Positions 13,154-62,954 of a DNA stretch of 64,000 nt are shown in pieces. The notes below the pieces were generated by a model that ran no database searches, was not told the DNA's origin, and was given only the letters and a program-made list of their open reading frames with translations. The translations under genes and the position numbers were made by a program. Source of the stretch: Octopus bimaculoides (Eukaryota). Location: positions 38,666,641-38,730,640 of the forward strand of contig NC_068987.1 of NCBI RefSeq assembly GCF_001194135.2, read 5' to 3'. Numbering within the stretch: position 1 is the stretch's first letter; every line of letters begins with the position of its first letter.

Positions 13154-13312
13154 TCACTTCCTTGAGACGATTCTCTTGAGACGATAGTCTGTCCTGCTTG
13201 TGCCCGACATTTGCGACATACTGTGAGTTTCTCCGAAACTGCTTTCTCCACCGCCCATAGTACCATTGAGGTTATGGAAATATGCTCTCATTTGTTCGTT
13301 CAAAGAACGACT
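13154..13312 (-). CDS. Terminal coding exon; SRSLNEQMRAYFHNLNGTMGGGESSFGETHSMSQMSGTSRTDYRLKRIVSRK*
   Basis: Long polypyrimidine acceptor ttccatcttcag|AGT, phase 0. TGA at 13156-13154. AATAAA hexamers lie downstream on this strand (e.g. 12274-12279, 12384-12389). Confidence 0.75.
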   Translation of the reverse strand, partial: SRSLNEQMRAYFHNLNGTMGGGESSFGETHSMSQMSGTSRTDYRLKRIVSRK

Positions 13313-14734
13313 CTGAAGATGGAAAGAAAATGAAAATAAAATACACATAAAGAAAATGAAAAAAAATAAACATAAAAGAAAATTAAAACAAAATAAACAT
13401 AAAAGAAAATGAAAACAAAATAAAAAAAGAAAAGAAAATCAAATAATAAACATCAATATAAAAATGTGATTTACTATTTAGTTATGACAGGGTGAGTTGT
13501 GTGATAGATTCAATAGAACGATGCATTTTTACACTTTGCAGTACTTAATCACAGAAATTTTACCGAGATTGAATATGTCGATAAAATAAAATATTTAAAG
13601 CTATACCAGTCAGATATAAATTTTATTGTAACCAAACTAAACCTTTCTTCCAAAAATGCGTGACCTCGTTCCTTTGTTACAAATCTTTATTTAGACACAA
13701 GAATGCAGCAGATGATAGAAGTAGTTGAGAAACAGAGAAAATACTTTGTAGTATTTTACCTCTTTACATAACGCCGAAGTCACCAAAAGGCTTAATTTAG
13801 ATATCATTATTTCCACTGGAGGCCAATGTCTATAGGGGAAGGTGTAAAATTGATTGACTCGACTCGAGTGTAATTACCGGTAACTGTTTTGCAAACCAAA
13901 AAGGTACTAAGTTCAACGGAAAATCAGATCTAGCTGGGTGTAAGCTCACATATAAAAACGCGACGCTAACTGATGCAGAAAAGGGATTCAGATCCTAACT
14001 TTTTTCTTTCGATTAATTTAACATTTTTATACAAAACAACGCTCATCAAATTTACAGTGGGTAACCGCGTATAGCTGAGATTGACATGAAGAACTACAGG
14101 TCTCTGCCATGGAGAGTCAATAAATTTACACACATATTTTGAATTTAAAAGTTTCTCTTGTTTGAATTTTGGTTGCTCAAAGTTTTCAGGCAAATAAATG
14201 TTATATTTTCTTTAGCAAACATTCAGGAACCAATGGAATATCATGAAATCAGTGCCTTTTGGGTTCAATGTTAGCTTAAGTAATGTCTACTTGCAATTAT
14301 CGGATCGCCGTAGTTTGCTCTCAAAACTGGATTATTTTAATTGACCATAAATGCCTTATATTTTCAGAGGAGAGACAATTAGGATTATTTTAATATTCCT
14401 AGATTTCCCGTCATCATTAGCGTTGTAAAATGAAGAACTCACTTAAACCAGTCACCTAAACAAATCCGAAAACTGTTTCACAAGCTACAAAATTCACTCA
14501 TCTGTTAGTCTCGGCAGATATTTGTCTCCCACTAGCGATGTAAACAAAAGTGTTTATATGCACCTAAAGCAAATGGTAACTACCACAGTTTTCTGTGTTC
14601 TAACACAGCATCCACTTTTAAGTGGAGACAAAAATTATCTCTTGGTATTAATACTGCCTTTGTCGCTATGAAGCATTTTTCACGTACAGGTGAAATATTT
14701 TGAAGATCTCATGTAAACATAAATTATTATTTAC

Positions 14735-14920
14735 CCAAGAATAAGACATTTGTCCGCTTCTGTTCAGCAACTGAACTTCGTCAGTTGAGTTACGGGTGAG
14801 TATTTCATCAGCTCTGGCAGACAGGTTTTGGTAAATTTGATCTATGTCAAAACCAAGCACACGACGACTGGAGCCGTCTGAATTGGAAATGTCAAAGAAA
14901 TGCTGATAATTTCTCCATGC
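14735..14920 (-). CDS. C-terminal-domain exon 2; AWRNYQHFFDISNSDGSSRRVLGFDIDQIYQNLSARADEILTRNSTDEVQLLNRSGQMSYSW
   Basis: Acceptor cagtcacag|GCA (an alternative in-frame AG lies 6 nt upstream, start 14926), donor TGG|gtaaat. 186 nt, phase 0-0. The W..Q..RR..FD..I..A..I..D..Y.W spacing resembles the recalled hillarin/LTD-1-like C-terminus. Confidence 0.85.
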
Positions 14921-16126
14921 CTGTGACTGTGAGTATAAAGAAAAGAAAACAGTTAGTTGTGAAATAACGTGATCAAGACAATATATTAAGTAATGGTGCT
15001 TAATTTTATTTTAACGTTGGTTTTAATCCAAATGCTTTACATATACTGATGGTTTAGCAATTGTCATTAGTAATGTTAAATTTTACTTTAATATAGAGAC
15101 TAGCTTCTTGACGATTTTCAGAATTAAAACAGAGTAATTGCTTGTTTTGATTTTCTTATATTTATATATGTATATTCTTTGCCAGATTAACGAGAATTTC
15201 GTTAACTTTGCATGTCGAATTTAATTCATCTATCGGGTTTGGTACAAGCAACGAAGAAAGCCGTAAAATAAACAAGTTGAGAGGATCTTGAGTTGAGTTG
15301 TTTATTTCTATCGATAACCTATTTCAATAAAACAAGGCGGATGGCAGCCTTCAGCAAAACTGAGAAGCACAAAATATGTCAAACATCTAATTTGATAACC
15401 AGTTATAACATCAGTATTTGCAAACTCTGTATTGAACATTTACGTGTATAAATATCCATAAACGTATATGTGCCCTTATCATACTTTAATAACAAGCAGA
15501 AATATTTTTGATTACAATAGAAACAAAGGGAATTAAGATAACTTATTACTAATGATATTTAATTTCAGCACTTCGGGTGTGAATATTCTTTATTAGAAAG
15601 AAATTCAAATGTTTATATGGTCCAGTAAATTTGCAAGTACAGTATTTATTATTTTTTTTTTTGCCTATTTACGCTGTTGGAGATTACCTTAATATCTATT
15701 TGTTTCAAGTTGCTTTGGGGAGTGTACAAAAGTGCTAATTCAGTATAGGGTTTGATCAAAATATTATACATTAATTTTAATAAACTCGCACTACTTACAG
15801 TTATAAATCCTACCTCTATATGGTAGGTATTACAGGTAGGACGACTTCGCTATAGATTTTGGATTTATTTAGAACATTGTCTAACGAGATTCGATCAAGT
15901 ATACCTACGGCCTAGAATTCATCACTTTATCTACTAGACTTGATGCAAGTTCCCCTGTAATAATTATGAATATTTTACTAGCACGTCTAAAGTTTTGGAA
16001 TCGACAGTTAAAATTAGCATCATTTTAAAACCCGATGCATGTTAAATCAATTACTTGGGAGAGAATGCAAATATCTTGTAACTCTCGCAGTTATAATTAA
16101 CAATCGTAAAATAGCTTATTACATAC

Positions 16127-16416
16127 CTCAGAATGTCTTTCATATTCGCCAAGGACCACCAATGCACTAATGAGAAGATCATGAGAGAAACCAGCCGAAC
16201 GCATGTACCAACCCATTCTAGAACTAGTTCTTGAGTCAATGCTGACATCGTCACGATTGAGAAAGGCACTGGGATCAGGGGCTGCATAACCGCGGATCCT
16301 GCTTCGAGCCTCATTCACTTCAATAGATAAATAGTCGGTGAGATTTTTTTGTTCAATCTCTATAACACATCGTCGAATATCATCCTGGTTGTCGGTCAAG
16401 AAAGCACTTTCGAGTT
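16127..16416 (-). CDS. C-terminal-domain exon 1; (K)LESAFLTDNQDDIRRCVIEIEQKNLTDYLSIEVNEARSR...LLISALVVLGEYERHSE
   Basis: Acceptor ttctttccttcgcacag|AA, donor TGAG|gtatgt. 290 nt, phase 1 to phase 0, joins exon 17 in frame. Confidence 0.85.
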
Positions 16417-16651
16417 CTGTGCGAAGGAAAGAAAAATGAGTATATTACACAATCCATGTGTATCTATTGCTGTGTATAAATATAAATATGCACAAACATG
16501 TGTGTATGTGTGTCTGTTTATGTATGTATGGGTGTGTGTGTGTGTATGAGTTGTAGGCGCAGGTTTGGCTGTGTGGTAAGAACTTTTCAACCATATGGTT
16601 TCAGGTTTAGTCCCATTGTGTGGCATCTTATATATATGTATATATATATAA

Positions 16652-17428: not shown

Positions 17429-17581
17429 TTATTAATCTCTGCCATGGTTTTAAATACTCTTTTTTCCGACAATCCACNNNNNNNNNNNNNNNNNNNNNNN
17501 NNNNNNNNNNNNNNNNNNNNNNNNNNNNNNNNNNNNNNNNNNNNNNNNNNNNNNNNNNNNNNNNNNNNNNNNNNNNNNNNN

Positions 17582-17634
<53 letters not shown>

Positions 17635-18329: not shown

Positions 18330-18512
18330 TGTCTTTAATATTCAAAGCATCCAACAATGGTCTGGCTTTCTGAATTTGAGGTTCCAGATCAGGATGTCTA
18401 TAAGGCTCAGCATCAGCAATTGCTTTCTCCAACTTAGGTTTGTCCTTATGAATTATTGATGTATTTATTTGGTCGAGCAAAGTACCAACCTGCTCGGGTG
18501 ACAAGCTTCTTG
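18330..18512 (-). CDS. Repeat exon 17; (S)RSLSPEQVGTLLDQINTSIIHKDKPKLEKAIADAEPYRHPDLEPQIQKARPLLDALNIKD
   Basis: Acceptor atttttag|CA, donor GACA|gtaaga. 183 nt, phase 1-1. Confidence 0.88.
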
Positions 18513-19615: not shown

Positions 19616-19789
19616 ATCTGCTACCACCATCCAAAGAATCGAGAAGGTCTCTGGCTTGCTTTATGTTACTGCTTAATTCTGGAGACTTGGCTGCTTCAGC
19701 TTCAGCAATAGCACGTTCAAGACCAATAATATCTTTCTGTTTAACAGCATGGTCTAGTTGATCACGCAAGACAGATGGAGATTTTGGAG
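19616..19789 (-). CDS. Repeat exon 16; (A)PKSPSVLRDQLDHAVKQKDIIGLERAIAEAEAAKSPELSSNIKQARDLLDSLDGGSR
   Basis: Acceptor ttttgtttctag|CT, donor AGAT|gttagt. 174 nt, phase 1-1. Confidence 0.9.
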
Positions 19790-22619: not shown

Positions 22620-22793
22620 CTTTATGTACACCTCCGATACTATTTAAAGTATCTCTTGCTTGCTGGATATCTCCCGTCAGTTCTGGATGCCCAGCAGCAA
22701 CACATTCGCTGATAGCTTTTTCAATAGCATTAGGATCCTTTTGTCTTATGGCAGATTTAAGTTTGTTCCGCAAAATATCTGGAGACTTTGAAC
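22620..22793 (-). CDS. Repeat exon 15 (subtype B); (G)SKSPDILRNKLKSAIRQKDPNAIEKAISECVAAGHPELTGDIQQARDTLNSIGGVHK
   Basis: Acceptor tccttttcag|GT, donor AAAG|gtaagt. 174 nt, phase 1-1. Confidence 0.92.
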
Positions 22794-23449: not shown

Positions 23450-23623
23450 CTCCACGACCGCCGCCTATATTTTCAAGTGCATCTCTGGCTTCTCTAAGGT
23501 CATATGATAACTCGGGGTAAGCTGCAGCTTCACATTCCTTGATAGCTTGTTCAAGAGCTGATTTGTTCTTCATAGCAACAGCATCATGGAGCATTTTTTT
23601 CAGAGATTCAGCAGATTTTGTAG
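23450..23623 (-). CDS. Repeat exon 14 (subtype A); (A)TKSAESLKKMLHDAVAMKNKSALEQAIKECEAAAYPELSYDLREARDALENIGGGRG
   Basis: Acceptor cttctttcacaaatag|CT, donor GGAG|gtaagt. 174 nt, phase 1-1. Hand-translated. Confidence 0.92.
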
Positions 23624-23668
23624 CTATTTGTGAAAGAAGTTAATTCATTAAATGTTTATATACACACA

Positions 23669-23717
<49 letters not shown>

Positions 23718-23870
23718 NNNNNNNNNNNNNNNNNNNNNNNNNNNNNNNNNNNNNNNNNNNNNNNNNNNNNNNNNNNNNNNNNNNNNNNNNNNNNNNNNNN
23801 NNNNNNNNNNNNNNNNNNNNNNNNNNNNNNNNNNNNNNNNNNNNNNNNNNNNNNNNNNNNNNNATATATA

Positions 23871-24149: not shown

Positions 24150-25140
24150 GTGAAAAAATTGCAATTAGAACCATTTCCCCGCTAATTGTGGGGGAAAAGG
24201 GCTAAGTGCAAAGGCAGCTGTAAAAGAAATTAACGATGTGGAAGGTCCGAGGATTGTCAACGAACATGTGGCAAGAATTGATTCAGATGTTACAAGGAAG
24301 GTGACACAAACCAAGGTCAGATATATCTTCTGTTGTGGAAGGTGTAGCTGTACTTGAAATGGTTGAACAACAGCCAAGTGCAAGCACTCGTACATTGTGA
24401 ACAGAATTTGATCCTTCACAAAGCGCCATCAATCGACACTTCTATAGGGTTGGCTTTGTGCACAGAACCTATCGAGAAGCTCCTCATGAACAGATCAATG
24501 AGCAGGCTCAACAACGTGTGAACGTTTGCAAACAACTGCTGGAAAATCCTCGAAATACCCGTTTTTGAAACTGGGATAGAAAAAAATGAATCTATTTTCG
24601 TAATCCCAATAAAAGAAATCAACGGCAGTGTTCCAGCTAGGCTTCAAAACCTGTCGTGAAGCAAGGGCTGTTTGAACAGAAGATTATGTTGTGCTTGGTG
24701 AAATTTCGAGGACGGTGGTGGTGTTGCACTTTGAGCTTGTCACAGATGGTCAAACTGTGAACGTTAACTTTTATGCCCAATACCTGCAGCGAGTATATGA
24801 CGCTTTGAAAGCTCGCTATCCAGTATTGATCAATCGAGGACATGCACTCCTACAACATGACCACGCCCCAAGACATACTGACAATGTGATTACCGAGCGC
24901 AAACTTCGGAAAACTGAGGGGCTAGAAATGCTACTTCACCTTGCCTACAACCTGGACCTTGCACCATCAGATTACCACCTTTTCCGAATCATGACTCATT
25001 TCCTGCACTGATGGATGTTAAAAAATGAGGATGAGAATGAAAACAGGTGCAAGGAGTTATTTTTTACTTTAAATCAGCCAAATGGTATAAGCACGGAACC
25101 GAGCTTCTGGCACAACGATGGCAACAGATAATAGAATATA
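24150..25140 (+). mobile_element. Mariner transposase remnant
   Basis: HFELVTDGQTVN..YAQYLQRV..LLQHDHAPRH..HLAYNLDLAPSDYHLFR (YSPDLAPSDYHLF motif). Confidence 0.85.
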
Positions 25141-26883: not shown

Positions 26884-27057
26884 CTCCACGTCCGCCTCTC
26901 AGAAGGTCCAATTTATCACGAGCTTTTTGTACATCAGATGCCAGTTCTGGAAAACCAGCAGCCGTAGCGTCTTTGATAGCTCGTTCCAATGCTGGTTCAT
27001 CTGCTTCTTTCATAGCATATTTCAATGCTTCGCGGACTGATTCAGGAGTTTTTATAC
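26884..27057 (-). CDS. Repeat exon 13 (subtype B-like); (G)IKTPESVREALKYAMKEADEPALERAIKDATAAGFPELASDVQKARDKLDLLRGGRG
   Basis: Acceptor ttttgtcaacaaaag|GT, donor GGAG|gtaaga. 174 nt, phase 1-1. Confidence 0.9.
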
Positions 27058-28389: not shown

Positions 28390-29230
28390 ATCGCTCGACT
28401 TCTATCTTTCAGCAAGTCATGCAGCCATTGGAGAAGTTAAAGTCACCCAAAAGGAATACACTGATGTGTTGTTCCAGTTTGGTGAGAACTTCTATCTTTG
28501 TTAGGTAGTCGTCAAACTTGCCTGTATGACTCGGAGCATACGGTGGGCGATATGTAGTACATATAACAATATTAAGTTGTTTTATGGGTACAATTTGAGT
28601 GTCACACACTGAATTTGAATATGACAGCAGGACATAGGGCGTGAGGTCTTCTCGGATGTACACAGCAACTCCACCATGACTCCTCTCCTTTCTATCTAAG
28701 CGTATGACAACATATTGTGGTATGTGTATTTCTGCATCCCCTCTATCAGGTCTAAGATGCGTTTCCACAAGTACCATGCATAAAGCTTGATTGAATGCCG
28801 CAAGGTCTCTCAGGAATGAGATTTTTGTCTTACAGTTGCCGTGCAACAGCCCTCCTATATTTAGAAGAAATAGTTTTGTGACGTTTGTGTTGGTGTTACT
28901 GGTGGCTATCCTGTATCTGTAGTCGAGGGTAGCCTTGTGTAGAAGTGGGTGTAGTTCTCAGTTTGTGTTTGTAGCCATGTCAGCTACCGATTGCAAATAA
29001 GTGTGTGTAGCTAAGAAGTTAGTGTTGAAATCATGTGGTTTTGGGCTCTGTCACACTACGTGGCAATTTGAGCTAGTATCGTCTACTATAGACTTAATCG
29101 ACCAATGCTTTGCGAATGAATTTGGTGGACGGAGATTGTGCAGAAGTCCTTTATGCAAGTATATGTGTGTGTACGTGTTTGCATTTGTCTCACACTGCTT
29201 AACAACTATCGTAGGTTTGCTTACGTCTTC
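28390..29230 (-). mobile_element. LINE fragment (APE endonuclease plus ORF1 end)
   Basis: ETHL..RLDRKERSHGGVAVYI..YRPP..LLGDFNF in ORF 28409-28846. Confidence 0.8.
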
Positions 29231-30329: not shown

Positions 30330-31220
30330 GGGCCAGAGCCCTGTCTTGAATGAAGATATAACGGCCACCAAAGGTTTCTGTGACCTAGGGTTACACTTTC
30401 TCATCCAACATTTCTGCATAAACTTCACTGTTGACCTTGACACCAGCATCGCTGAATATCACGCAAGACTTGTACCCATCAGATGCAACTGCAGCCCACA
30501 CCATGAATAAAGCTGGTTTCTGACGGCGTTTAATGACTCCTGCTACCTTCGGGCAAATTTTCTTCATTACGTGCATAAAGCTTGTCATTCTCCCTGTTGG
30601 TAACTGCCCCCACAGTGAAGATCTTCTTGTCGGACTAGATCAACACTTTGTTAGCGGCGTCTTTCATCTCAGCTAACATGGTTTTACCCCTGTCGAACCC
30701 TTATTCTTGGAAGCTGCTGAAATTAACTGCCGAGATTGTTTCTTGTATGCAGTTAGCTTTAAATCCTCTTTAAAAATCCCGTGCATTAATGGTTTTGAAA
30801 TATCAAGAGCTTTTGCAGTTTCTCTTGCACTCTTGGAAGGATTTCGGTTCATTCGCTTCTTCACAGCTTCAGCAGTATGAATTGATCGTTTCTTACCAGG
30901 ATACCAGGAATTGGCTTGTTAGAGGTAGTAGTAGACGTCATATACCGTTTCCAGATATTGAACACTGTTTTATGGCACACATTCAACTGTTTTGTTATGT
31001 CCTAGTTGCTCACGCCAACTATTTTCAAAGTGACAATCTGATCACATTTTGCTTTCGATACCACATTTGTTTACAAACCTGTTATAGACGAACGAAACAA
31101 TAGACACATGAACAAAAGACATATGCAGATCTTTATGTGAAATGTAGATAATATTACCCCAAGCGATATTCTTTATGAAGAGTTTTAAACATGGGTAAAT
31201 CTTTCTGAGACATCCTGTAT
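30330..31220 (-). mobile_element. Tc1/mariner-superfamily (maT/DD37D-like) transposon, 3'-truncated
   Basis: RNPSKSARETAKAL..LKLTAYKKQ and RQKP..MVWAAVASDG.K...GVKVNSEVY..ML. Probable left end ta|caggatgtctcagaaag at ~31218. Confidence 0.7.
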
Positions 31221-33413: not shown

Positions 33414-33975
33414 ATCAACTGCCGATGTGACTATCACTCACATGTGGGTCTTGGCATTTGCAACAGACGCTACTTTTCTAAGCCCGAAGCAAGACTTTCC
33501 AGTTTTCCTGACGGAGATTCATGGTCTCGCGGGACAGACTGATACCTCTAAACATACATACATACATACATACATACATACATACATACGTATGTATGTA
33601 ATGTATGTGCGTACGTGCACACACATACACACACACGCACGCACACCACACATACACACACGCACACACACACATACACACACACACTCACGTATCATAT
33701 ATGATTGAAATAATATAGCATAAAATCGTGATATTTAATCATAAAAATAGAAAAAAAATCTATATTTTTTTCGATTAAACTCAAAAAAATTTAATGAGCT
33801 ATTTAGTTAGTAGGGTTCAGTTGAAGAATTTTCTAGTACTTATTGTATGATTTAGTTTTAGAAACTGCAAAGTTTATATTATATAGCATTACTTCTGCCG
33901 TCTTTCTATGTCTAGTAGTTCCACAAACGTTTTTGGAGCTAAGATAAACCCCGAAATTGTTATCAAATTGCTAAC

Positions 33976-34155
33976 CTCCACAGGGTCTGCTTAACTGCTG
34001 TAAATGAGTTCGAGTGGGAAGCATGCCATGAGCTATTTCTGGATATTCTGAGGTGTCACCTTGTCGGACAAATTTCAGTAGACTGGGTTTCTTTACTGAT
34101 CCTGGCTGTGTTGGATGATGTAAGGTCTTCAAATCATTACAAACGGCAAAGAAAT
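33976..34155 (-). CDS. Repeat exon 12 (highly diverged, A-like); (D)FFAVCNDLKTLHHPTQPGSVKKPSLLKFVRQGDTSEYPEIAHGMLPTRTHLQQLSRPCG
   Basis: Acceptor caagtttag|AT, donor GGAG|gttagc. 180 nt, open, phase 1-1. Keeps the YPEI motif and R/L spacing. Confidence 0.65.
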
Positions 34156-35247
34156 CTAAACTTGATGAGTGTTCTATAATATTTAAGATGAAAATTAAAG
34201 GAAAAATCAACAGCAAATGTCTTTCTTTTTGGGCGGGGTGAATATGTAGATATTTACTATTGATTTTCACTGTAGCAAAACAATTTAAGGCAAACATTCG
34301 AAGTAAACTTTGAAATTTAATCTAAAGCAAATAATTCACCACACATTTTTCAGAGAAAAATTCCGTTATTTGCATTCTTGGAAAATTAGGTCCTATATTA
34401 AACTGGCTTCAACTAAAAGTAAAACAAATTTGAGGATTTGATTTATTTTATGCTTACCTTTTTCTCTCGAACACTAATTACTCCTTTTAGTATAGAACAC
34501 AAATAATGAAATAATTATAGTCATAAAGTGTTTTCATTAATTTTTCATTAATTCTAAAGGTCAAATAATTTGCTTAGTAAAACAAATAGTTCAAAAATAC
34601 TGGTCTTTAGAGCACTTCTTTTATTCTTTTCATATAAAAACTATGGATGAATAATGTAATTATATTACTCTAATATAAGTAAACATGAATTCAAATATGT
34701 CATTACTACTAAAACTGTTGTAAAAAATCTGAATATATATGTAAATTTAAAAATATGCAAGAGTAACAAAAAGAAATGATAAAAGAAATCATAATTTTTA
34801 ATATAGTACGAACACATATTTGAGATTCTGTCTCTACCCAAATCAGAACCAATAAACGCTTTGAGATATTCTGATAATCGAGATGAGATGGGACTGACAG
34901 TCTGTCTATTGACTGAAACAAAAAGTACTTGAAATTGCCTGGATGTTACATGTCTACCAGTCAAATACTTTTGTTAGTGCTATGTTGAACATTCAAAGGA
35001 ATATAAGAGCAACGTCAAATCAAGTGGCACTAGAATATATTTTGTAACGGAATTTGTCGTTATTTAACATTACGAATTAACTGCAGCAATTCTGTTTAAA
35101 CTTATCGGAAACATCCCATTATAAGCACCAATTTGAAACAGAAGGAAAACAGAAGAGATAAATGAGTTAATCTAGGTCTGTTTCTTCTGCTTCAAATTTT
35201 AAAATATGAATAAGCAAGTCTGTATTAAAATTGCAACATACTGTTAC

Positions 35248-36367: not shown

Positions 36368-36566
36368 AGTGAGAGTGATAGTAATGGCAAAGAAGTGCTT
36401 TTAAATAAAACAATACACAAATGTATAGAAAGCATATATTTCATTAAGTAATGTAAAACACATGGAAGAATACTGCTGAAAGTTGCAGAGGGCAAGTGAT
36501 TTTGTGAAGAGCAGTTAAGCTGAAGCAATTTTGTCTTCGAATCGCATGACCCACCTCTACAGTTAC

Positions 36567-36728
36567 CTTTTGGAGCTGCAAGATAACCTCTAGCCTGTTG
36601 AATCTCAGGTAACAACTTCGGATATTCAGCACTTATACATTCCTTGATTGTTCTCTCAGTAGCTTCTGGATTATTTCCTCTTTGAGCAGGCTCAAGTCTC
36701 GCGCGCAGGGATTTAAAGGGTTTTATAC
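36567..36728 (-). CDS. Repeat exon 11 (subtype B, shortened); (G)IKPFKSLRARLEPAQRGNNPEATERTIKECISAEYPKLLPEIQQARGYLAAPK
   Basis: Acceptor tgtgattaccag|GT, donor AAAG|gtaact. 162 nt, phase 1-1. Confidence 0.8.
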
Positions 36729-36954
36729 CTGGTAATCACATTTTTTAGCAATATATAATCTCATTTTATATGTCATATCGCATTATTTTCGCATTATATT
36801 ATATCGCATTATATTTTACTATATGTTAAAGTTATATTATTACACTGGAATTTGTAAGTGTAGCCATATAGAATAGGTAATATGTTGTTTTGTACTTTTA
36901 GATCTAATTGAAATTCAGCTTTCAATCTAGTGTTAATGACTGGAATCAACTCAC

Positions 36955-37126
36955 CAGGTTCCCTGCCTACTACGCACATGACGCGCATCTTATAAAGAGA
37001 GGGGTGTGTAAATATAACGTACTTTCTTTGACTTGCACATCCATTTAAAATCTTACTGCCTCTATAGCTTTTATGGTATTCATCTGCAATCAAACATGCT
37101 TCTGAGTCAATCATGGACGTGTTCAA
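36955..37126 (-). pseudogene. Probable decayed repeat pseudo-exon (VEHVHD*LRSMFD ... KILNGCASQRKYVIFTHPSLYKMRVMCVVGREP)
   Basis: Good acceptor (aaattttgtag) and donor (CCTG|gtgagt) 172 nt apart. D/LR at repeat positions 6/8-9 and C at position 31 counted from the donor, but there is a TGA at codon 7 and a net 2-nt frameshift. Confidence 0.5.
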
Positions 37127-38817: not shown

Positions 38818-38994
38818 CTGATGCGCGGTCCTCTTCCATAAAATCAAGAGCATAGCGAGCTAACTGGATATCAGACATCAATTCTGGATGTCCGGATCCA
38901 ATGCATTCTTCAATCGCATTTTCTAATGTCGATTTATCGTTTTGTCTTTTTGCTTGGTCAAGTTTAATGCGCAGGGAATCGGGGGTCTTTACTC
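38818..38994 (-). CDS. Repeat exon 10 (subtype B); (G)VKTPDSLRIKLDQAKRQNDKSTLENAIEECIGSGHPELMSDIQLARYALDFMEEDRAS
   Basis: Acceptor ttttccttcaccag|GA, donor TCAG|gttggt. 177 nt, phase 1-1. Hand-translated. Confidence 0.88.
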
Positions 38995-40142
38995 CTGGTG
39001 AAGGAAAATAACTGTCAGTAATTTAAAATTTTGATAAACCTTTAGCAAAAGCTATCAAGGAAAAAAGACATTTTTGAATATTGCACTGCCATTTATATAA
39101 TGATTTTCTCCAGAAGTTAATCACCTAACTTGCAAACATTTACAATCACACGGATTGCAAATTCTTCGTACTGTTTCAGCATTTATTGACATATCTCTTT
39201 TCATCCGCAGCTCTATTGAGTGAGAATCTCTCGAACAGGTCCCGCTTTATATCAAAGATCTACACGATGTCGTATAAAACCAGTTACATATAAACGAATG
39301 CTCGATTACAGGACTTTATACGCCTATATACTTCCTTCGTCTACTGAAAAGTTAACAAACTATCATCAAAGAAGAACCTTAAATCATTTTGGAACAGAGA
39401 AACTTAGTTTCATTCACTGGTTCCTAAATAAATTGCATTATATATATAAGAACACGCACTCACTCATACGCGCGCGCGCACACACATATACATACATAAT
39501 TTTCGATACTATATATCTATATATATATATATATATATAGAAAATGCACATATAAAGACTAACAATCTATGACACTTGAAGTAGTTACCACAGCTAAGTA
39601 ATCTTGTCTTTTCAGAATATACCCACTCAAAACTCTAATTATTTATATTGGGCAACTTAGTAACATACGAGAGAACTGCTTATGCTTCTTGAATGTCATA
39701 CTCTGCACAGACATTAACTCACATTCTAGTACATAGGCAAACACATATTTAATAAACATTCAGGTTTTCTATACATACAAAATTCTCCTTCTGCTATTAA
39801 TTCTTAAGTGGACAGTACTTATATTCTCCATATAGTTACAATTAAAGCAACCTCATCCTCTCATTACATGCAATGGGATGCAAATGTAATAAACATATTG
39901 AATAATCATGCTCTCAGATGCATTCCATTAACATGTCTTTTTCGCCATTAACCTCCAGTAAGTATAACTAACATTCAGCATCTTCATTGAAGTATCAATA
40001 CTCATATATTGTTTCATTGCAATATATTATTTGAAAGTAACAGAAACCACAACACCAATACTTATTTCTCTTTTTACTCAGACATTCAAAAGCTTTGCAC
40101 AAATATTCAGTGCATTTTCTAAGTGAATTATAATAAACTAAC

Positions 40143-40316
40143 CTCCACGACCATAACCCAAACTTTCCATAGTATCTCTCGCTTTGCAAAGAATACCGGA
40201 GATTTCTGGATAACCAGCTTCTTCAGCTTCACAAATTGCATTGTCTAATAGTGATTTGTTTTTCTGGTTGATAGCTGTCCTTAGTTGATCTCTGATTTTT
40301 GCTGCTGAAGTAATAT
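40143..40316 (-). CDS. Repeat exon 9 (subtype A); (H)ITSAAKIRDQLRTAINQKNKSLLDNAICEAEEAGYPEISGILCKARDTMESLGYGRG
   Basis: Acceptor tttatcatcaactag|AT, donor GGAG|gttagt. 174 nt, phase 1-1. Hand-translated. Confidence 0.9.
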
Positions 40317-41780
40317 CTAGTTGATGATAAACCCAACAGTCACAGATTTTTTTTTAAATAGAAAGAAAATACATATAAAACAAAGCGCAGATATTAGAAT
40401 TTCAAATAAAATATGAATTTCAAGCATTCAAATAGACGTAACTAATTTAAATTTATTTCTCTAAATATTAATAAGTACACGTGTTATTTGATAAGAACAT
40501 TAATATTTGTAGTAATTCAGAAATATTTTCCGCTCATTTACTCAGATTACAGAATTATACAGTAAATAATGCTAATATATGGGATTACTAGATGAGTAAG
40601 ATAAATTTATTCTATAATCTTATGAACACTCTTCAAATTTAAAAATGCTGATCACTATCAGAAGGAAGCCTCAGGTATTGGAGAAGTAACAAATATTATA
40701 TGAACAATAGCTTTATCCGTCTTTCTGGTGTTAAGTACTCATTCTACTTCTTCGTTATCAACATTTAAGTGTGTGTGTGTGCGTGTGTGTATGTGTGTGC
40801 GCGCGCACAAGTGTGTGGGTGTGTATTGTAGTAAAATTAATAAGAAGAGTACAGTGAATTTGCAGTGGGGAATGAAAAAAGTTGAAAAGAGAGACAGTTT
40901 TATATTCTCTATGTTAAAAAAAAAATTAAATAAAATTAAAAAAAGATTGCAGTTGGATGTGAAAGTGTGTACTTTAAATATTTGTCGTAAAGCTACATAG
41001 TTTCACTGTTTATATTATCATCATTCCCACACTTGAATGGGAGATTTTTTTAGACACTACTCCCTCTTTACACACACACACACATATATGATGTGTGTTT
41101 GTGCTTCTTTATATGCCAGACAAAGTCAATGTCATTGTTTTGATGTTACCACCAGAATTTGAATTTCGACCTTTAAATTTATACGTCATTAGTCAGATGT
41201 TTTTCTTTTGAGTGTGACTAGTGTGTGTTGTATGTGCATTTAACATTCCACTATGTTATTAATATAGCTTCCATTAGTAATCGCTTAATTTATTTAACAA
41301 CTCAGTTGAGCATAGAAGTGTTTCCCACTAACCTTTGCTTATCAAGTTCTGTCATGTGCTTTATAACTTAGTGCATTGTAATTGCTCTTTGATGAAAACG
41401 TATGAAGAACCGATGGGTGAGAGTGTGTGTGAGTATATATGCGTTCATGCATGTGTAAATGTATATGTGTGTAATTATAAAGTCATTTTCAAATACGCAC
41501 ACACATATGCATATATATATATTACATATGTAAATTATTTCTAACCATATATGAGTGCGTGTGTGTATGCGCGCGCGAGCGCTTGTTTGTGCGCGTACGC
41601 GAGTTGTGTGTGTGTGCGTGCGCGCGCATTTGTGCATGTGCGTGTGCGTGTATAGACACATTTCCTGTGTTTCTAATGTGAATGTTTGCATCAGTGCAAA
41701 TTATAGCAACATTATTATGATTACATTGGTGATGAAAACATTGACATTGTGATGAAAAATATCATTAAATAACATCTTAC

Positions 41781-41954
41781 GTCCATCCCCGCCTTGTAAG
41801 ATGTTCAAAGACTTTCGCGCGTTATCAACATCACTTTGAAGTTCAGGATAGCCGGCAGCAATACATCTCTTAATAGCTGATGCGATTTCATTTTCATCTT
41901 TTAGCTTAATACTATCCTTAAGTTTGTCTCGAAAAATGCTGGGTGATGTATTCC
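41781..41954 (-). CDS. Repeat exon 8 (subtype B); (G)NTSPSIFRDKLKDSIKLKDENEIASAIKRCIAAGYPELQSDVDNARKSLNILQGGDG
   Basis: Acceptor ttttatcaattaccag|GG, donor GGAC|gtaaga. 174 nt, phase 1-1. Confidence 0.9.
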
Positions 41955-42592
41955 CTGGTAATTGATAAAATACCACTTGGTACTTAATTTCATGCATCAA
42001 GATATATTTTGTTTTTCAGATTGTTATTGATCTTTCATTTTCCTTTAAATTTAAATTAAATGAAAACTTATTAAAGATATAATTGCTTAATACCTATCAT
42101 AATAAATAATCCTGCTTGATCATGAGGACGGCTACACACAACAAAAATACCAGCAACGGTTAATGATCAGAAAACTTTGTTAGGATGTTAGGACTCCATG
42201 AAATAGTTTAGAGGTCCATAACTACACAAATTCATGAAAATAGAATTTTATTTACATTAAATATTTAAAGAGGAACTCTTAAAATCCCTTCTAAAATCCT
42301 TAATCATGCAGCTGGCATTTTGTACCAAATTGTGAAAGTTTGAAGTAAATGTTCACTTTATCATGAATTTATAAAGATTTTATATATCAAGTGAACTGAT
42401 ATTTAAAAAGTAGCAATACAATCTTTAACATTTATTCCCTTATACTTACTCTGTTTTATGATTCGTAATCAACTGTGTTAGAAATATCGTAAAGGGAAAT
42501 TGAGTTAGTATTTCTGACAGTTCGTTGTATTCATGATATTTAAAAACCCTTGCTAATATATCTTATTAAAATGCTAAAAATACAATGCTAAC

Positions 42593-42778
42593 CTTCGAAG
42601 CGGCTCCCCAGCTGTTGAAGAGTTTTTCTTGCTTCATACAGCTCAGGACCAAGCTCTGGATACTCAACACTTTCGCATTCTTCGATAATGTTTTCAAGAT
42701 TTACTCTGTCTTTCCGCTCAACAGCTGTCCGTAATCGGCAGCGCAGATTACCTGGGGACTTAATATCTGTTTTGGAAT
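42593..42778 (-). CDS. Repeat exon 7 (subtype A-like); (D)SKTDIKSPGNLRCRLRTAVERKDRVNLENIIEECESVEYPELGPELYEARKTLQQLGSRFE
   Basis: Acceptor tttgaattttag|AT, donor GAAG|gttagc. 186 nt, phase 1-1. Hand-translated. Confidence 0.85.
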
Positions 42779-50343: not shown

Positions 50344-50517
50344 CACCTCGACCACCACCAAGTTTTTCAAGAGTTTCCCTAGCTTTTCGGAGATCGTAAG
50401 CAAGTTCTGGATAACCAGCAGCTTCAGCATCGTGAATAGCTTTTTCCAAATTTGCTTTGTTCTTCTGGGTGACAGCACGTTTTAACTGGTTACGCAAAGA
50501 ATCGGGTGTCGTCGATC
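50344..50517 (-). CDS. Repeat exon 6 (subtype A); (G)STTPDSLRNQLKRAVTQKNKANLEKAIHDAEAAGYPELAYDLRKARETLEKLGGGRG
   Basis: Acceptor ttttttttgtag|GA, donor GGTG|gtgaga. 174 nt, phase 1-1. Hand-translated. Confidence 0.92.
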
Positions 50518-51815: not shown

Positions 51816-51989
51816 CTTCAAGCGAATTATTCAAAGATTCAAGAAGCTTTCTTGCTCTACATATTTCCAAATCAAGTTCTGACATGCCAGCGTCAACACA
51901 TTCATTGACAATATTTCGTAAATTTTCTTCATCCCCTAACCAAATTCCTGCCTTCAGTTTCTCACTAAGTGAATCGCCAGACTTTGTTC
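51816..51989 (-). CDS. Repeat exon 5 (subtype B); (G)TKSGDSLSEKLKAGIWLGDEENLRNIVNECVDAGMSELDLEICRARKLLESLNNSLE
   Basis: Acceptor ggatagtag|GA, donor GAAG|gtttgg. 174 nt, phase 1-1. Confidence 0.8.
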
Positions 51990-52880: not shown

Positions 52881-53297
52881 TTCACATATATGTATTTGTA
52901 TGTGTGCGTATGTGTGTGTATATATGTATATACATATATATACATATATATATGTACATATGCATATCTAAGTGTATATATAAATATCTCAATATATATT
53001 ATGCATATATTTGTGCAGGTGTGGCTGTGGTAAGAAACTTGGTACCAACCACATGGTTCCGACTTCAGTCCCAATGCGTAGCAAGTGTCTTCTACTATAG
53101 CCTCGGGCCAACCAAAGCCTTATGAGTGGATTTGTTAGGTGAAAACTGTAAGAAGCTCATCGAGTATATATATATATATATAAGGGGGGAAAATTGAATA
53201 TTAATTTGATTAATATCCATTTAAAACCAGTGGCCTAGCAAATTGAAAAATCTGAAGATTCAGAAAAATTATAATATATACATATATATATATATAT

Positions 53298-53347
<50 letters not shown>

Positions 53348-54132
53348 NNNNNNNNNNNNNNNNNNNNNNNNNNNNNNNNNNNNNNNNNNNNNNNNNNNNN
53401 NNNNNNNNNNNNNNNNNNNNNNNNNNNNNNNNNNNNNNNNNNNNNNNNNNNNNNNNNNNNNNNNNNNNNNNNNNNNNNNNNNNNNNNNNNNNNNNNNNNN
53501 NNNNNNNNNNNNNNNNNNNNNNNNNNNNNNNNNNNNNNNNNNNNNNNNNNNNNNNNNNNNNNNNNNNNNNNNNNNNNNNNNNNNNNNNNNNNNNNNNNNN
53601 NNNNNNNNNNNNNNNNNNNNNNNNNNNNNNNNNNNNNNNNNNNNNNNNNNNNNNNNNNNNNNNNNNNNNNNNNNNNNNNNNNNNNNNNNNNNNNNNNNNN
53701 NNNNNNNNNNNNNNNNNNNNNNNNNNNNNNNNNNNNNNNNNNNNNNNNNNNNNNNNNNNNNNNNNNNNNNNNNNNNNNNNNNNNNNNNNNNNNNNNNNNN
53801 NNNNNNNNNNNNNNNNNNNNNNNNNNNNNNNNNNNNNNNNNNNNNNNNNNNNNNNNNNNNNNNNNNNNNNNNNNNNNNNNNNNNNNNNNNNNNNNNNNNN
53901 NNNNNNNNNNNNNNNNNNNNNNNNNNNNNNNNNNNNNNNNNNNNNNNNNNNNNNNNNNNNNNNNNNNNNNNNNNNNNNNNNNNNNNNNNNNNNNNNNNNN
54001 NNNNNNNNNNNNNNNNNNNNNNNNNNNNNNNNNNNNNNNNNNNNNNNNNNNNNNNNNNNNNNNNNNNNNNNNNNNNNNNNNNNNNNNNNNNNNNNNATCC
54101 CTAGTATACACACACACACACACACACGCACG

Positions 54133-56124: not shown

Positions 56125-56168
56125 ATCAAACTGTTTATTAAGGAAAGCATTCTTCTAGTGTAATATAT
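56125..56168 (-). pseudogene. Probable 3' half of the same decayed repeat exon (IYYTRRMLSLINSL)
   Basis: Continues the 57794-57916 fragment in register (D-I-x-x-A-R-x-x-L position) on the other side of the LINE. Resembles the exon 5 end ARKLLESLNNSL. Followed by gtaatc. Short, so could be chance. Confidence 0.45.
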
Positions 56169-57793
56169 GAATGGATTCTCTACTGTCAATGTTGTTTTTG
56201 TTATTAATATCATTGCCATTACTATCACTTGCTCTAACACCCCAAACCTACCCAGCACCACCACCATCATCATTATCATTATCATTATCGTTTGAGCTGT
56301 TTTTCAGATCTTTGCATCTTATTTGGTATGGAAAGGAAATGTGGATGATAGTACTGCTTCGGAAAGGCACCAGCCTTCAGATACAGATGGATCTTCCAGT
56401 ACCCAGATGGGAAAATGGTGGTCCTGGACGTGAAAAGTAGTAAAGGATATGTCTTTAAATTCTGTGCCCCCGACCAGGACGGGATGGCCGGATTTCTTCA
56501 GGTATCCAAAAGCTTTCCTAGGAATATCCTGCCCTTTAGTGTTAGTGGGCGGTTACAACGCTACGATGGTTGCATATCGAGATTGTGTTGGGTTAGCTGA
56601 TAAGAAAGGTGGACGTAAAAGCCTAGAAAACCGGCTCGGTCGTTGACAACAGATTGACAGGTACTGACTAGATTTCCCGAACGTGACAATATGAACATGG
56701 CAAATAACATCTGGTCATCCAGATCACACCTTAGCAGAGTATTCTGTAGGTCAGTAGATAGGAATAACATAGGGTTGTCCATGATTTAAATTAATCGGCT
56801 ACAGAGACCACACATTTATATGTACGGTCGACCTAGATAAGCTGTATGGGCAGGGACCCAATCACTGGAAACTGAACGCATCTTTTCCGACACGGTAAGT
56901 TTACGGTGACCGTATTAGAGAACAAGTTAAGAGCGAGTTGATGTGAGCATTCGTCAACAAGCGATGGTGGCTACTCCTGAAAAGAGCAATCTGATCAGAA
57001 CAATAAGATTTAGTAAGGACATAGTAGAGAATTCTAGAGTAGAGCAAGAGCTAGTAACACAGCAAAGACGCTAGGAAAGATATGATCGACGTGATGGCGG
57101 CGAGATTAGCTCTTGACCAGTTCTTCAACGCTAAGCACGAAGGCTGTGTTGTCAGAACCAGGACCCATGCTTTCATACATGAGAGAATGAAAGCTCAGAT
57201 TGTACAGGCGCAACATGGAACAAGCTATAATTTGGTTTTCGATGGATCAGAGTGCATGCTATTCAAGTCTAAGTAGGAGTAAGCAGCTTTTCAGTGACAC
57301 TCTGCTCAAAAATTTGGGGTGGATGGTGAACTGTAAACGGAAGTGTCCTTTACCACCGATATTGACGGCCTATTGCGACTCTCGATAGGAATACAGAGTC
57401 CTGCGAAAGGCTGATAACAGCTGGCATAGTTTACCTGGCGAAATTTAATCAGACTTGGTCGGAGACCTCTTGACAGATGTCTAATGCAAATATTAGCAGA
57501 ACTGGAGAATTCTTGATTCTGTAGAAAGATGTATGGTAGTGCTGTTGAGAAAGAACCTAAACAAGGGGGATGTCTAACAACTTCAAGCCGTAACCCTGCT
57601 AAATGTTCGATGATCAGAGTGACTGGACACTTGTCGGGATCATTCAGTATTATGTGTTCGGTTCTTCAATGATCCCCGCTCTCTCCACTTCTGTACATCA
57701 CAACCATAGGGCACACTGCAGATATTAGAAATTTTGAGAGGCATCTGTTGAACTAGGATGTGAGAGATCCGTGTTTGCATAGGACATCACCAA
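56169..57793 (+). mobile_element. Decayed L1/Tx1-like LINE (endonuclease and linker region)
   Basis: VVLDVKSSKG..FKFCAP..FF; RLALDQFFNAKHEGCVVRTR. Lies exactly between the two halves of a pseudo-exon. Confidence 0.6.
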
Positions 57794-57916
57794 TACTGCC
57801 TCGAGTTCAGTCATTGAAACAGTAACACATTCTAGAGTACTTTTTTTCAAAGATTCTTTGCCATTATTTTTTATAATCTCTTTTAATTTTCCTTGGAATC
57901 ATCAGAATATAAACTT
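57794..57916 (-). pseudogene. 5' half of a decayed subtype-B repeat exon (KLKEIIKNNGKESLKKSTLECVTVSMTELEAV)
   Basis: In register with exon 1 (KLNDAMKLKDKITLNKAIRECVIAGFPEMDAD). Frameshifted near the acceptor (catcaag|) and cut off at the edge of a LINE remnant. Confidence 0.65.
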
Positions 57917-58809: not shown

Positions 58810-58977
58810 CTCCACGACCATCACTCAAGCTCTCTAGAATATCTTTTGCATCTCGCAAATCAGAATTCAATTCTGGATGACCGGCATCTTCACATTGACT
58901 AATAACTTTCTCCAAAGCAGCCATGTTTCTAGCTTCAATTGCTTTCTGTAATTCTCTACGTAATGTATCTGGAGAAG
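58810..58977 (-). CDS. Repeat exon 4 (subtype A); (A)SPDTLRRELQKAIEARNMAALEKVISQCEDAGHPELNSDLRDAKDILESLSDGRG
   Basis: Acceptor ttcttatatgtag|CT, donor GGAG|gttaga. 168 nt, phase 1-1. Not in the ORF track; translated by hand. Confidence 0.9.
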
Positions 58978-59285
58978 CTACATATAAGAAAACGAAATAG
59001 ATTTGGATTTCATTAGGCCATTAGCATAAAGATAACTTCACCATTCATTTTTAGAATCAAAGCAAAATTTAATAACAAAATTGATAAGCAATTAAAGTAT
59101 ATATTTACAACTACTAGAACTACAGTAATATTCAACGATTGTACGAATTGGAAAGCTTTACGTACATATAATATACGTATACCACCTTTATACAACTTTT
59201 CAATGATTTTTATCACGAAGGAGAAAAAGTCTCGTAAAAATGATGGCATTACTGAGAAAAAATTGCTCAATATCAACTTTCAAAC

Positions 59286-59456
59286 CTTCATATTTTCGTC
59301 GCTCATCCAGTTTGCTTCTGGCATATTCTATATCAGAGTCCAATTCCAGCATTCCAGCAGCAATGCATTTATCAAGAATTTCCTCAATATCTTCTATGTT
59401 GCCTTCCATAACTGCTTTTTGCAGTTCTTCACGAAGGGCGAAAGGGGATAATATTC
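59286..59456 (-). CDS. Repeat exon 3 (subtype B); (G)ILSPFALREELQKAVMEGNIEDIEEILDKCIAAGMLELDSDIEYARSKLDERRKYE
   Basis: Acceptor aatgttttag|GA, donor GAAG|gtttga. 171 nt, phase 1-1. Confidence 0.85.
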
Positions 59457-59696
59457 CTAAAACATTATCCAAGTACATATTGTTTACAATACAGAAATTG
59501 AGAAACAAGAAAATTCCTAAAATGTGTCATATAACAATAATATAATTTTGAAAGGCAAAATCTTAGAAATGGCTTAAAAATTTTTTTTTATGGTTTTAAT
59601 CAGCAGTTAAAAACTGTACTCTGTTTAAACATTACAAGAACTAACTACTGATGAAAGAAATTTATTTAGACATGGAATGTTTAACTCCAGGCTAAC

Positions 59697-59870
59697 CTCC
59701 ACGACCACCTCCGAGACTTTCGAGGGCATCTCTTGCTTTACGGAGGTCAGATGCCAATTCAGGGTATCCGGCTTCCTCACATTCTTGTATGGATTTTTTC
59801 AAATTTTCAGGATCTTTCTTTCTCATGTCTCTTAATAATTGGTTGCGGAGAAAAATTGGAGACTTTTTGT
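59697..59870 (-). CDS. Repeat exon 2 (subtype A); (D)KKSPIFLRNQLLRDMRKKDPENLKKSIQECEEAGYPELASDLRKARDALESLGGGRG
   Basis: Acceptor cttctaacag|AC, donor GGAG|gttagc. 174 nt, phase 1-1. Confidence 0.9.
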
Positions 59871-59949
59871 CTGTTAGAAGAGTGGTTGAGAAAATATCAT
59901 TATGAACTTGCACTGTAGACAAACAGTAAATAATTTCTTCAGGAAATAT

Positions 59950-59954
59950 TCATA

Positions 59955-59990
<36 letters not shown>

Positions 59991-61258: not shown

Positions 61259-61336
<78 letters not shown>

Positions 61337-61379
61337 CAGCAAATTATCATCATCATCATTACTGCTGTTGCTGCTGCTG

Positions 61380-61448
<69 letters not shown>

Positions 61449-61450
61449 AG
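59950..61450. repeat. (GAT)n and (TAC)n trinucleotide microsatellites attached to SINE ends
   Basis: Direct reading. The window has many other (CA)n, (TA)n, (GA)n and (GATA)n tracts, often at gap edges. Confidence 0.95.
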
Positions 61451-62780
61451 CTAATATCAGAAGAAATTTAAGACTTAACTACATAAACTTAAGTTTTCAT
61501 TTATTTTGTAAAGCATTTATTGAATGTAAGGCTATTTTCGTGTTTTCACTATAGTGTACATAAATATTAACAATATATATTGATGTCAAACATCCGATTA
61601 CCAATTTTAATCACAGTTCTATATGTATCACACGCAGAAACACACACGCACATACATGTATATAGATGCAGAGATACATATTTAAGTTTAATCCATAATG
61701 GTGAGTCCGACAAAATATATTTTGTTTCGCCCGATGGCCCTGTTAAGGACCTTGTAAAACACATACAAACTAGTCATATAGATATGTGTGCGCGTGAGAG
61801 TCTGTGTGTGTGTGCGTGTGTGGGGGGTTGTGTTACACTGGCTTTATCACAGATAATTCTACATTTTAATATCTTTTATTCAATTTCAACTCAACTCTGA
61901 TTCAATAATATCGAGCAATAATTCTGGTGGACTGCCTTATAGCTATATTTCGTATTTTTATTCCAATTACTTGTCCTCATCCTTTTGAATCTTATAAATG
62001 ATTCCGCATAACAACTCCAACTTATCCCTTAGTCAGCTTATCTATCCACTATTATGCGTTATTAATGAATCTTTAGTTTCCTAAATCTGTCAGTTACTAT
62101 CCCTGGCGTGTAATCTGTTGCAATAGATCTAATGAATGAGAGCTAATATGACACTTTGTCTTCACAGTGCCCCTGCTTAGTTGTTTCTCAGATAACAACT
62201 TACTACTTCATTACTACGATATTGTTACCCCTACATATTTATTTAACCAATTCAGCTATGTAGGTTGTTATTCCATTTACACTAAATCTGATGAAATGAT
62301 TGGTTGAAAGTTTCATTTAATATCGTATGGTTTTATGATAATTGATATAATATTTTCAATAATTACCGGCTCGAACTTGACTGGTTAATAAATGTAAAAC
62401 CGTCATCTGCATTCCTTTGTATTACACACACACACAAATACACACACATACACAGACACAGACACACACACACACACACATGCACGCACGCGCGCACACA
62501 CACACACACACACACAAACACATATGTATTATATGTACGCGTGCATATAATATTATATTTATATTATATTTTGTTACATTGACACATCCTCACACCGAAA
62601 TTATTAATTTAGAAAGCTTTGTACAAAATGTATAAGATCGCTGCGATAGCAATGTATTATTGCAAATATAATCATAAAAAACATAAAACAAATAAGATAT
62701 AAATTTTACTCTGTTAATATTTTTAAAATATTAAATTTCTTAATAATGTTTCTTAGTCGGGTTGAAATAATTGTTCTAAC

Positions 62781-62954
62781 CTCCTGTGCCACCACCAAGT
62801 TTATCTGATAGATCTCTGGCTTGTTGTATGTCAGCATCCATTTCGGGAAATCCAGCAATCACACACTCGCGAATGGCTTTATTCAAAGTAATTTTATCTT
62901 TTAATTTCATTGCATCATTTAGTTTTTTCCTTAAGGTTTCTGGACACATTGATC
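62781..62954 (-). CDS. Repeat exon 1 (subtype B) of repeat-array, hillarin-like gene; (G)SMCPETLRKKLNDAMKLKDKITLNKAIRECVIAGFPEMDADIQQARDLSDKLGGGTG
   Basis: Acceptor ttttcatcccgtag|GA, donor GGAG|gttaga. 174 nt, phase 1-1, open frame, matches the repeat consensus. Confidence 0.9.

Follow-up and report, generated by a model that had tools for sequence, protein, structure and literature searches.

The stretch of DNA analysed here (hereafter the window) comprises 64,000 nucleotides (nt) of the Octopus bimaculoides genome (NC_068987.1, positions 38,666,641 to 38,730,640) and matches GCA_001194135.2 CM046607.1:38,666,641–38,730,640 at 100% identity, gaps included. It is 36% GC, rich in microsatellites, interrupted by ten runs of N, and eukaryotic in character. 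Its minus strand carries an array of repeat exons, each encoding one unit of about 58 residues, which splices into three terminal exons. A first-pass annotation made from the sequence alone had proposed a large gene built of one repeat per phase-1 symmetric exon, and this architecture is real. A single giant gene of approximately 216 kb probably has its 3′ third in the window.

Repeat exons and terminal exons

A profile of the repeat gave 16 strong matches in the window (E 1e-14 to 1e-28) and a weak match at 57797–57889; a refined profile added a degenerate copy inside the first terminal exon. All 18 matches lie on the minus strand, and the profile search returned no plus-strand match in the window at E≤1. 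Thus 16 of the 17 minus-strand repeat exons reported in the first-pass annotation are strong, and the 17th is only a degenerate candidate. The acceptors of all 16 strong units consist of a polypyrimidine tract and an AG that leaves two leading bases, with the AG placed 20 nt upstream of the conserved core (14–32 nt in four exons). Their donors read G/GT and leave one trailing base, which gives phase 1 at both ends. Exon length is 174 nt in 12 of the 16 (the earlier count for this class was ten), with 171, 168, 177 and 183 nt occurring once each. The coordinates, canonical splice sites, symmetric phase and divisibility by 3 that had been claimed hold for every strong exon. Concatenated, the 16 exons give 929 codons without a stop; with the terminal exons T1–T3 added in frame, the total is about 1140 codons, close to the ~1200 first estimated for a stop-free splice. 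Glycine linkers do close units of the array, but the GGxRG type is found at the end of only some half of them, fewer than the usual presence first described. The units come as A-type and B-type, and their alternating A/B order constitutes a weak super-repeat, with a mean identity of 0.45 at lag 2 versus 0.39 at lag 1.

In order of transcription, the array within the window opens with R1 (62781–62954; minus strand, as are all exons named here), a 174-nt, phase 1/1, A-type exon that ends in GGGTG, scores 91.5 bits and has no high-identity match in A0A0L8GL38, a UniProt model of this locus. The next three exons are phase 1/1 and are used in that model: R2 (59697–59870; 174 nt, B-type, GGGRG linker), R3 (59286–59456; 171 nt, charged linker DERRKYE) and R4 (58810–58977; 168 nt). 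The degenerate candidate follows at 57754–57891; it would measure ~138 nt if a weak donor were used, scores 13.7–15 bits, lacks the third helix and is probably a decayed or doubtful exon. R5 (51816–51989; 174 nt, phase 1/1) is skipped by A0A0L8GL38 and intact in O. sinensis, and R6 (50344–50517; 174 nt) is the first of the six 3′-most repeats common to all orthologous models. R7 (42593–42766; 174 nt, phase 1/1) has 98.3% nucleotide identity to O. sinensis and is absent from the protein models read. R8 (41781–41954; 174 nt), R9 (40143–40316; 174 nt) and R10 (38818–38994; 177 nt) belong to the RefSeq gene LOC128248363 (XP_052825468.1), while R11 (36555–36728) is 174 nt long with the donor GAG/gtgggt, and its orthologue in O. 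sinensis LOC118764272 is spliced likewise. The array ends with R12 (26884–27057; 174 nt), found in every protein model read; R13 (23450–23623; 174 nt), with 100% amino acid identity to O. vulgaris; R14 (22620–22793; 174 nt); R15 (19616–19789; 174 nt); and R16 (18330–18512; 183 nt, phase 1/1), a divergent last full unit. Of the terminal exons, T1 (16127–16416; 290 nt, phase 1 to 0) encodes a degenerate capping repeat and the start of a tail domain, T2 (14735–14926; 192 nt, phase 0/0) encodes the core of that domain, and T3 (13154–13312) is coding from 13312 to 13157, with the annotated stop ending at 13154.

No assembly gap overlaps an exon; the closest (23718–23863) is separated by 95 nt from the acceptor downstream of it. 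The symmetry of every repeat exon makes the reading frame independent of gap content. The orthologous stretch of O. sinensis (27.7 kb, without Ns) contains ten orthologous repeat exons that correspond one to one, and in unchanged order, to those of O. bimaculoides from the exon starting at 51989 (R5) to the one starting at 22793 (R14); each is of 174 or 177 nt, AG/GT-bounded and in open frame. No extra repeat exon occurs in this gap-free stretch at the positions of the O. bimaculoides gaps, a comparison that leaves out the gaps at 17478–17581, 53348–54096 and 63455–63862, which fall outside it. Across the first of these three, the join from exon 18512 (R16) to T1 is contiguous in O. vulgaris, Argonauta and transcript-derived proteins. 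The edges of the N runs are often CA/TG or TA-rich microsatellites (for example 17582–17631, 23660–23717 and 53296–53347), and the gaps are therefore probably repeat-induced assembly breaks and not missing unique sequence.

As had been anticipated, the array runs on upstream of the window: A0A0L8GL38 has about 15 further units, and the first repeat exon of the gene lies ~137 kb beyond the window edge. An AT-rich, 20-kb piece of a genome contig from ENA (L005) has 19 units, all of them on a single strand, alternating between A-type (..AAGMPELD.DI..) and B-type (..YPELG.DL..GGGRGG), nearly all as one unit per exon with the same boundaries. Two A+B pairs in this piece (5881–6228 and 9971–10318, plus strand) are fused into single 348-nt exons, and a fused A+B pair is present also in a Logan fragment (P0005); such pairs are indicative of a putative intron loss or gain between units. 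Additionally, a 1293-nt Logan contig (L001, run SRR25158155) contains a single open reading frame (ORF) that covers two repeats, then the capping repeat and then the tail (P0159). This ORF has 49% identity to octopus, and the contig represents a spliced mRNA of another species with the predicted joins.

Gene models, orthologues and family

The spliced window product matches A0A0L8GL38_OCTBM (P0001; 1563 residues, "uncharacterized"), which uses nine window repeat exons together with T1–T3, skips seven strong exons and has ~830 residues encoded upstream of the window. A called O. bimaculoides gene of 5242 residues spans the locus, and a called O. sinensis gene of 6596 residues (LOC115214248), with an Ig-like_KY domain, spans the orthologous stretch. 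XP_052825468.1 (P0002, LOC128248363) corresponds exactly to exons 41954, 40316 and 38994 (R8–R10) spliced together, and its O. sinensis counterpart (P0154, LOC118764272) adds the orthologue of exon 36728 (R11). The gene had been described as hidden, which it is not: A0A0L8GL38, the 5242-residue model and LOC128248363 all cover the locus. An exhaustive profile search for proteins with the repeat returned 259 matches, mostly single-exon fragments, while word-indexed protein searches returned one match each for the repeat and tail queries and missed the giant models and XP_052825468.1.

Turning to the N-terminal end, an O. bimaculoides model annotated as "kyphoscoliosis peptidase-like, partial" (P0076/P0156) ends in one copy of the repeat. 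This KY-like model lies on the same strand, ~170 kb upstream, and the first repeat exon is found 8.7 kb downstream of the model. O. vulgaris CAI9725887 (P0157; 2069 residues), a cluster-mate of P0156, begins with a KY-like head, which is followed by a K/E-rich linker, 16 repeats and the tail found in the window. Argonauta LOC115214248 isoform X1 (P0160; 1720 residues), from a gene spanning 204.6 kb, has the same layout with 10 repeats and the Pfam domains Ig-like_KY and Transglut_core. Both proteins have 87–100% identity to window exons R6 to T3. Head and window-exon orthologues thus occur in one protein in O. vulgaris and Argonauta, whereas the O. bimaculoides models are split. In precomputed Pfam assignments, Ig-like_KY (PF23265) is on P0156, P0160 and the 6596-residue O. 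sinensis gene, a domain that lies outside the window; Transglut_core (PF01841) is listed for P0160 and P0164, is weak on P0156 and is faint at the Argonauta locus. We consider it likely that the octopus gene is the orthologue of O. sinensis and Argonauta LOC115214248 and of O. vulgaris CAI9725887.

On the evidence of these domains, the gene is assigned to the KY/transglutaminase-like family; in O. bimaculoides it has been annotated in fragments, and it is uncharacterised. No literature mention of the accessions or gene IDs was found, and the literature on KY in molluscs and octopus yielded incidental expression or proteomics mentions only. The KY core appears to lack the Cys-His-Asp catalytic triad: in an alignment of the octopod and related proteins, the sequences are ...KGSYESLF... 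and ...NTWNAV... at the presumed Cys and His motifs (read GSY and NTW), as placed by motif reading and not by a profile alignment. The head is thus probably non-catalytic.

The models read contain 10, 16 and 24 repeats, and all three have the last six repeats and the tail in common. By their lengths, the 5242- and 6596-residue models would imply ~87 and ~94 repeats, or some 85–95 modules overall. A KY-family protein of the annelid Owenia has ~1–2 degenerate copies, and an Octopus paralogue (P0163) has none; because of this, we assign the huge array as a lineage-specific expansion within this gene, as judged from the sequences compared.

Exons skipped by protein models

Since the exons are symmetric, they can be skipped without a frameshift, as had been pointed out, and the annotations are consistent with this. 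Comparison of O. bimaculoides with O. sinensis gave a baseline mismatch of 6.6% in deep intron. Exons used by all models have a mismatch of 5.6%, not significantly different from deep intron, with a ratio of nonsynonymous to synonymous divergence (dN/dS) of 0.32 (synonymous divergence, dS, 0.11). The skipped exons R5 and R7–R11 are at 2.4% (binomial p=1e-8 versus deep intron), and their 100-nt flanks at 4.3% (p=1e-3 versus deep intron). Regulated cassette exons typically show high nucleotide conservation extending into their flanks and low synonymous divergence. Because conservation reaches the flanks and synonymous divergence is low, these data suggest that R5 and the block R7–R11 are putative regulated cassette exons and not decaying pseudo-exons. 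The low synonymous divergence at 36555–42766 and 51816–51989 may reflect a splicing-regulatory or RNA-editing constraint.

The same exons bear on a first alternative, in which R1, R5, R7–R11 and the candidate at 57891 are non-functional pseudo-exons in introns, the real protein is a KY-like protein of 1,700–2,100 residues, and the giant models are over-predicted. The O. vulgaris and Argonauta models, with only 16 and 10 repeats, are consistent with this explanation, as are the dN/dS of 0.72 in the skipped exons, the weak GTT donors and lost Gly linker of several of them, and the clearly degenerate state of the 57891 candidate. However, the skipped exons and their flanks are better conserved than deep intron, and all of the skipped exons are open, of exact length and AG/GT-bounded in O. 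sinensis. Four of them (R8–R11) are joined by RefSeq, R8–R9–R10 in one species and with R11 in the other. Moreover, models of 5242 and 6596 residues exist, and the Argonauta gene is still more than 200 kb long despite its short model. We regard wholesale pseudo-exons as unlikely.

A second alternative concerns R8–R10 or R8–R11, which could constitute an independent nested gene (LOC128248363/LOC118764272) with its own promoter and 3′ end, encoding a protein of 3–4 repeats. RefSeq does annotate this block as a distinct gene, in O. bimaculoides as well as in O. sinensis, and the O. sinensis gene has its own terminal exon, with an orthologue in the window. Against this, the "start codon" falls within intron that is read through immediately before a phase-1 acceptor, and the end of the O. 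bimaculoides model reads into the next intron, features typical of a partial transcript model. The exons match their neighbours in strand, phase, size and family, and the model leaves out R7, which lies 640 nt upstream and is just as well conserved. A nested gene is accordingly an improbable explanation. The counterpart of the O. sinensis terminal exon is a non-repeat ORF in the R11–R12 intron (33974–34183, minus strand; 90% amino acid identity), which could represent an alternative 3′ end or have arisen from misannotation.

Fold and relatives of the repeat module

AlphaFold2 models of four consecutive units predicted three helices per unit (~14, 14 and 17 residues) with a predicted local distance difference test (pLDDT) score of ~85; the linkers scored below 50, and the predicted template modelling (pTM) score was 0.30. 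A single unit modelled with a 31-sequence alignment gave pLDDT 84.6 and pTM 0.62. The linkers between modules are short and either Gly-rich (GGGRGG, GGTGD) or charged, and the conserved positions of the unit are structural ones (L, A, I and a PEL cap). These predictions fit units that are independent three-helix mini-domains on flexible linkers, like beads on a string. The first-pass annotation had suggested, as one of two options, a helix-hinge rod, which the models do not bear out: each exon is predicted to encode a three-helix module, with no fixed arrangement between units.

Foldseek searches of the PDB with the four-unit and one-unit models found no significant neighbour. The repeat profile matched, among PDB sequences, only de novo designed helical repeats (DHR), at E ~0.01 and via a G-x-PEL capping box. 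DHR proteins share with the octopus unit an idealised helix, the G-x-PEL capping box and then another helix; they are artificial, the E value is marginal, and the likeness represents convergent idealised sequence, not homology. No Pfam domain falls on the 58-residue unit, and the precomputed Pfam field is empty for A0A0L8GL38, P0159 and the repeat-only models. The unit is thus a helical domain outside curated families, for which no Pfam, PDB or literature description was found. The earlier statement that no such family had been described holds for this module, but not for the gene, which falls in the KY/transglutaminase-like family.

A weak helical motif, L..AI..gD...L..AI..AE.aG...AR.lL, occurs in many copies in P0008, P0009, P0031 and P0144, which are large protist proteins (Rhodelphis, Polykrikos) and a Lysinibacillus S-layer protein. 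We did not accept these proteins as orthologues: the motif is generic, at 15–21 bits per unit, and the resemblance could reflect homology or convergence.

The character of the units also bears on a third alternative, a Dscam-like generator of combinatorial isoforms in which regulated choice among many exons would serve, for example, recognition. A combinatorial isoform generator had been the other option of the first-pass annotation; what speaks for cassette behaviour of the exons is indirect. The architecture is permissive for this, all exons being symmetric, and repeat numbers differ among models. The array, however, has no mutually exclusive exon clusters; its units are idealised helices of a generic kind, conserved at structural positions; the orthologues have no signal peptide or extracellular hallmark; and the alternating A/B order suggests use in series, which is how the exons appear in all models. 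We consider such a generator very improbable.

The conserved tail

The C-terminal tail of ~210 residues is conserved. Aligned by BLASTP, the octopus tail matches the tail of an Owenia "Kyphoscoliosis peptidase" at E=4e-9. Searched against the PDB, the Owenia tail gave 10 matches, all of them chains of the dynein stalk or microtubule-binding domain; the best was DNAH6 residues 2760–2883 (E=9.5e-5), and others include 3J1T, 3ERR, 5AYH and 6RZB. A joint tail profile searched against the PDB had DNAH6 2750–2885 as its sole match (E=0.019). With moderate confidence, we propose that the tail encoded by T1–T3 is remotely similar to the microtubule-binding domain (MTBD) of dynein heavy chain. Dynein differs in having a motor and an antiparallel stalk, both absent from the octopus protein, in which microtubule binding is a possibility raised by sequence similarity.

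In T3, a short sequence is duplicated in tandem (ATCGTCTCAAG x2) ahead of the annotated stop at 13154. The C-terminal sequence shared with O. vulgaris and Argonauta (...SRESSQGSDNTNAHRP...FFQRKY*) runs on in the +1 frame to ~13048 (window 13048–13312, minus strand). This suggests a putative frameshifting indel in O. bimaculoides T3, either real or an assembly error.

Proposed function and comparison with known systems

The product would comprise a KY/transglutaminase-like head, a K/E-rich linker, a very long array of 58-residue modules and a tail. Each module would derive from its own phase-1/phase-1 exon and fold independently as a three-helix mini-domain. We propose that the protein acts as a long, flexible and extensible cytoskeletal tether or spacer whose ends would bind different partners, one end through the KY-like head and the other, possibly to microtubules, through the tail. 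Its length could be set by the number of symmetric exons included, with R5 and R7–R11 as regulated cassettes. This combination of KY head, module array and tail makes a giant, length-tunable cytoskeletal tether the most likely function, one that we hold to be probable, and the pseudo-exon, nested-gene and Dscam-like explanations are less well supported.

Several points weigh against this proposal. The AlphaFold alignments are shallow and consist of paralogues only. RefSeq places R8–R10 in a separate gene inside the locus. The repeat numbers of the 5242- and 6596-residue models were taken from their lengths, not counted in the sequence. The dN/dS of the skipped exons (dS 0.03), resting on only 25 substitutions, does not demonstrate protein-level constraint on them. 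Finally, the similarity of the tail to dynein is transitive, through the Owenia homologue, as the PDB returned no dynein match to the octopus tail alone or to a cephalopod-only tail profile.

A fuller version of this proposal is more tentative, and we think it possible rather than probable. Octopods, and probably other cephalopods, would make a protein of ~6,600 residues (~750 kDa) with a non-catalytic KY-like head, ~90 three-helix beads on Gly/Arg linkers and a dynein-MTBD-like tail. It would serve as a length-programmable tether or entropic spring running from microtubules to a KY-binding partner, with the R5 and R7–R11 cassettes setting its length. The low synonymous divergence of these cassettes would reflect splicing control or A-to-I editing, and the 58-residue unit would be a new family, expanded from the two or so copies of the annelid orthologue.

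Among known systems, the KY/hillarin family (PF01841 and PF23265) has the same domains, which are N-terminal in the orthologous models of O. vulgaris, Argonauta and O. sinensis, and the Owenia protein has both head and tail in common with the octopod protein. The window itself encodes no KY domain, and the Octopus paralogue P0163 lacks the array. To our knowledge, vertebrate KY has neither the repeat array nor the tail. The likeness to titin, nebulin and obscurin lies in giant size, tandem modules on frame-neutral exons, a super-repeat (weak here) and models that vary in module number. Those proteins are built of Ig/Fn3, PEVK or nebulin repeats, in contrast to the 58-residue three-helix units here, and there is no sequence or fold relationship; their length isoforms arise by exon skipping, whereas here differing lengths are seen in gene models alone. 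Spectrins and spectraplakins similarly place tandem three-helix modules between an N-terminal head and a putative microtubule-binding C-terminus. Spectrin repeats are ~106 residues long and joined by continuous helices, in contrast to the 58-residue octopus units with disordered Gly-rich linkers, and the repeat had no spectrin-family match in PDB sequence, hidden Markov model or Foldseek searches. With respect to a cytoskeletal role, the KY protein of vertebrate muscle is associated with the cytoskeleton and has a link to filamin C (PMC6078408).

Mobile-element remnants around the gene

Several mobile-element remnants were identified in and around the gene. Downstream, 8270–10300 (plus strand) contains a degenerate Ty3/gypsy-type remnant with a reverse transcriptase/ribonuclease H ORF (E=3.7e-8 against Ty3 Gag-Pol), and a nearby ORF at 4877–5777 (plus strand) has a CCHC zinc knuckle and appears gag-like by eye. 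The intron between R12 and R13 harbors a fragment of a mariner (Mos1-like) transposase (24691–25011, plus strand; E=4e-15 against Mos1 structures). Also by eye, ORFs at 30391–30864 (minus strand) resemble Tc1/mariner elements, an ORF at 28409–28846 (minus strand) resembles the endonuclease of a long interspersed nuclear element, and a series of ORFs at 297–1823 (minus strand) resembles a hAT-type transposase (...TADCWSTHNRSYLGMTAHWLD...).

Implications

The gene itself is already computationally annotated; what stands out is the exon-modular array in a KY-family gene, together with the 58-residue unit. For annotation, one O. bimaculoides gene is split into at least two RefSeq models (the KY-like partial model and LOC128248363) beside the 5242-residue model, and the older UniProt entry A0A0L8GL38 covers it only partly. 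If the proposal is true, the product would rank with the largest proteins of cephalopods. It would also represent an elaboration of the KY family specific to this lineage; the vertebrate member of that family causes myopathies, and its molecular role is still unclear. The layout of head, array and tail would point to a testable function, a tether from microtubules to a KY partner. With one module per symmetric exon, the gene would be a natural experiment on how the length of a molecular spacer is controlled by duplicating exons and splicing them as cassettes, comparable to titin and nebulin although the fold is different.

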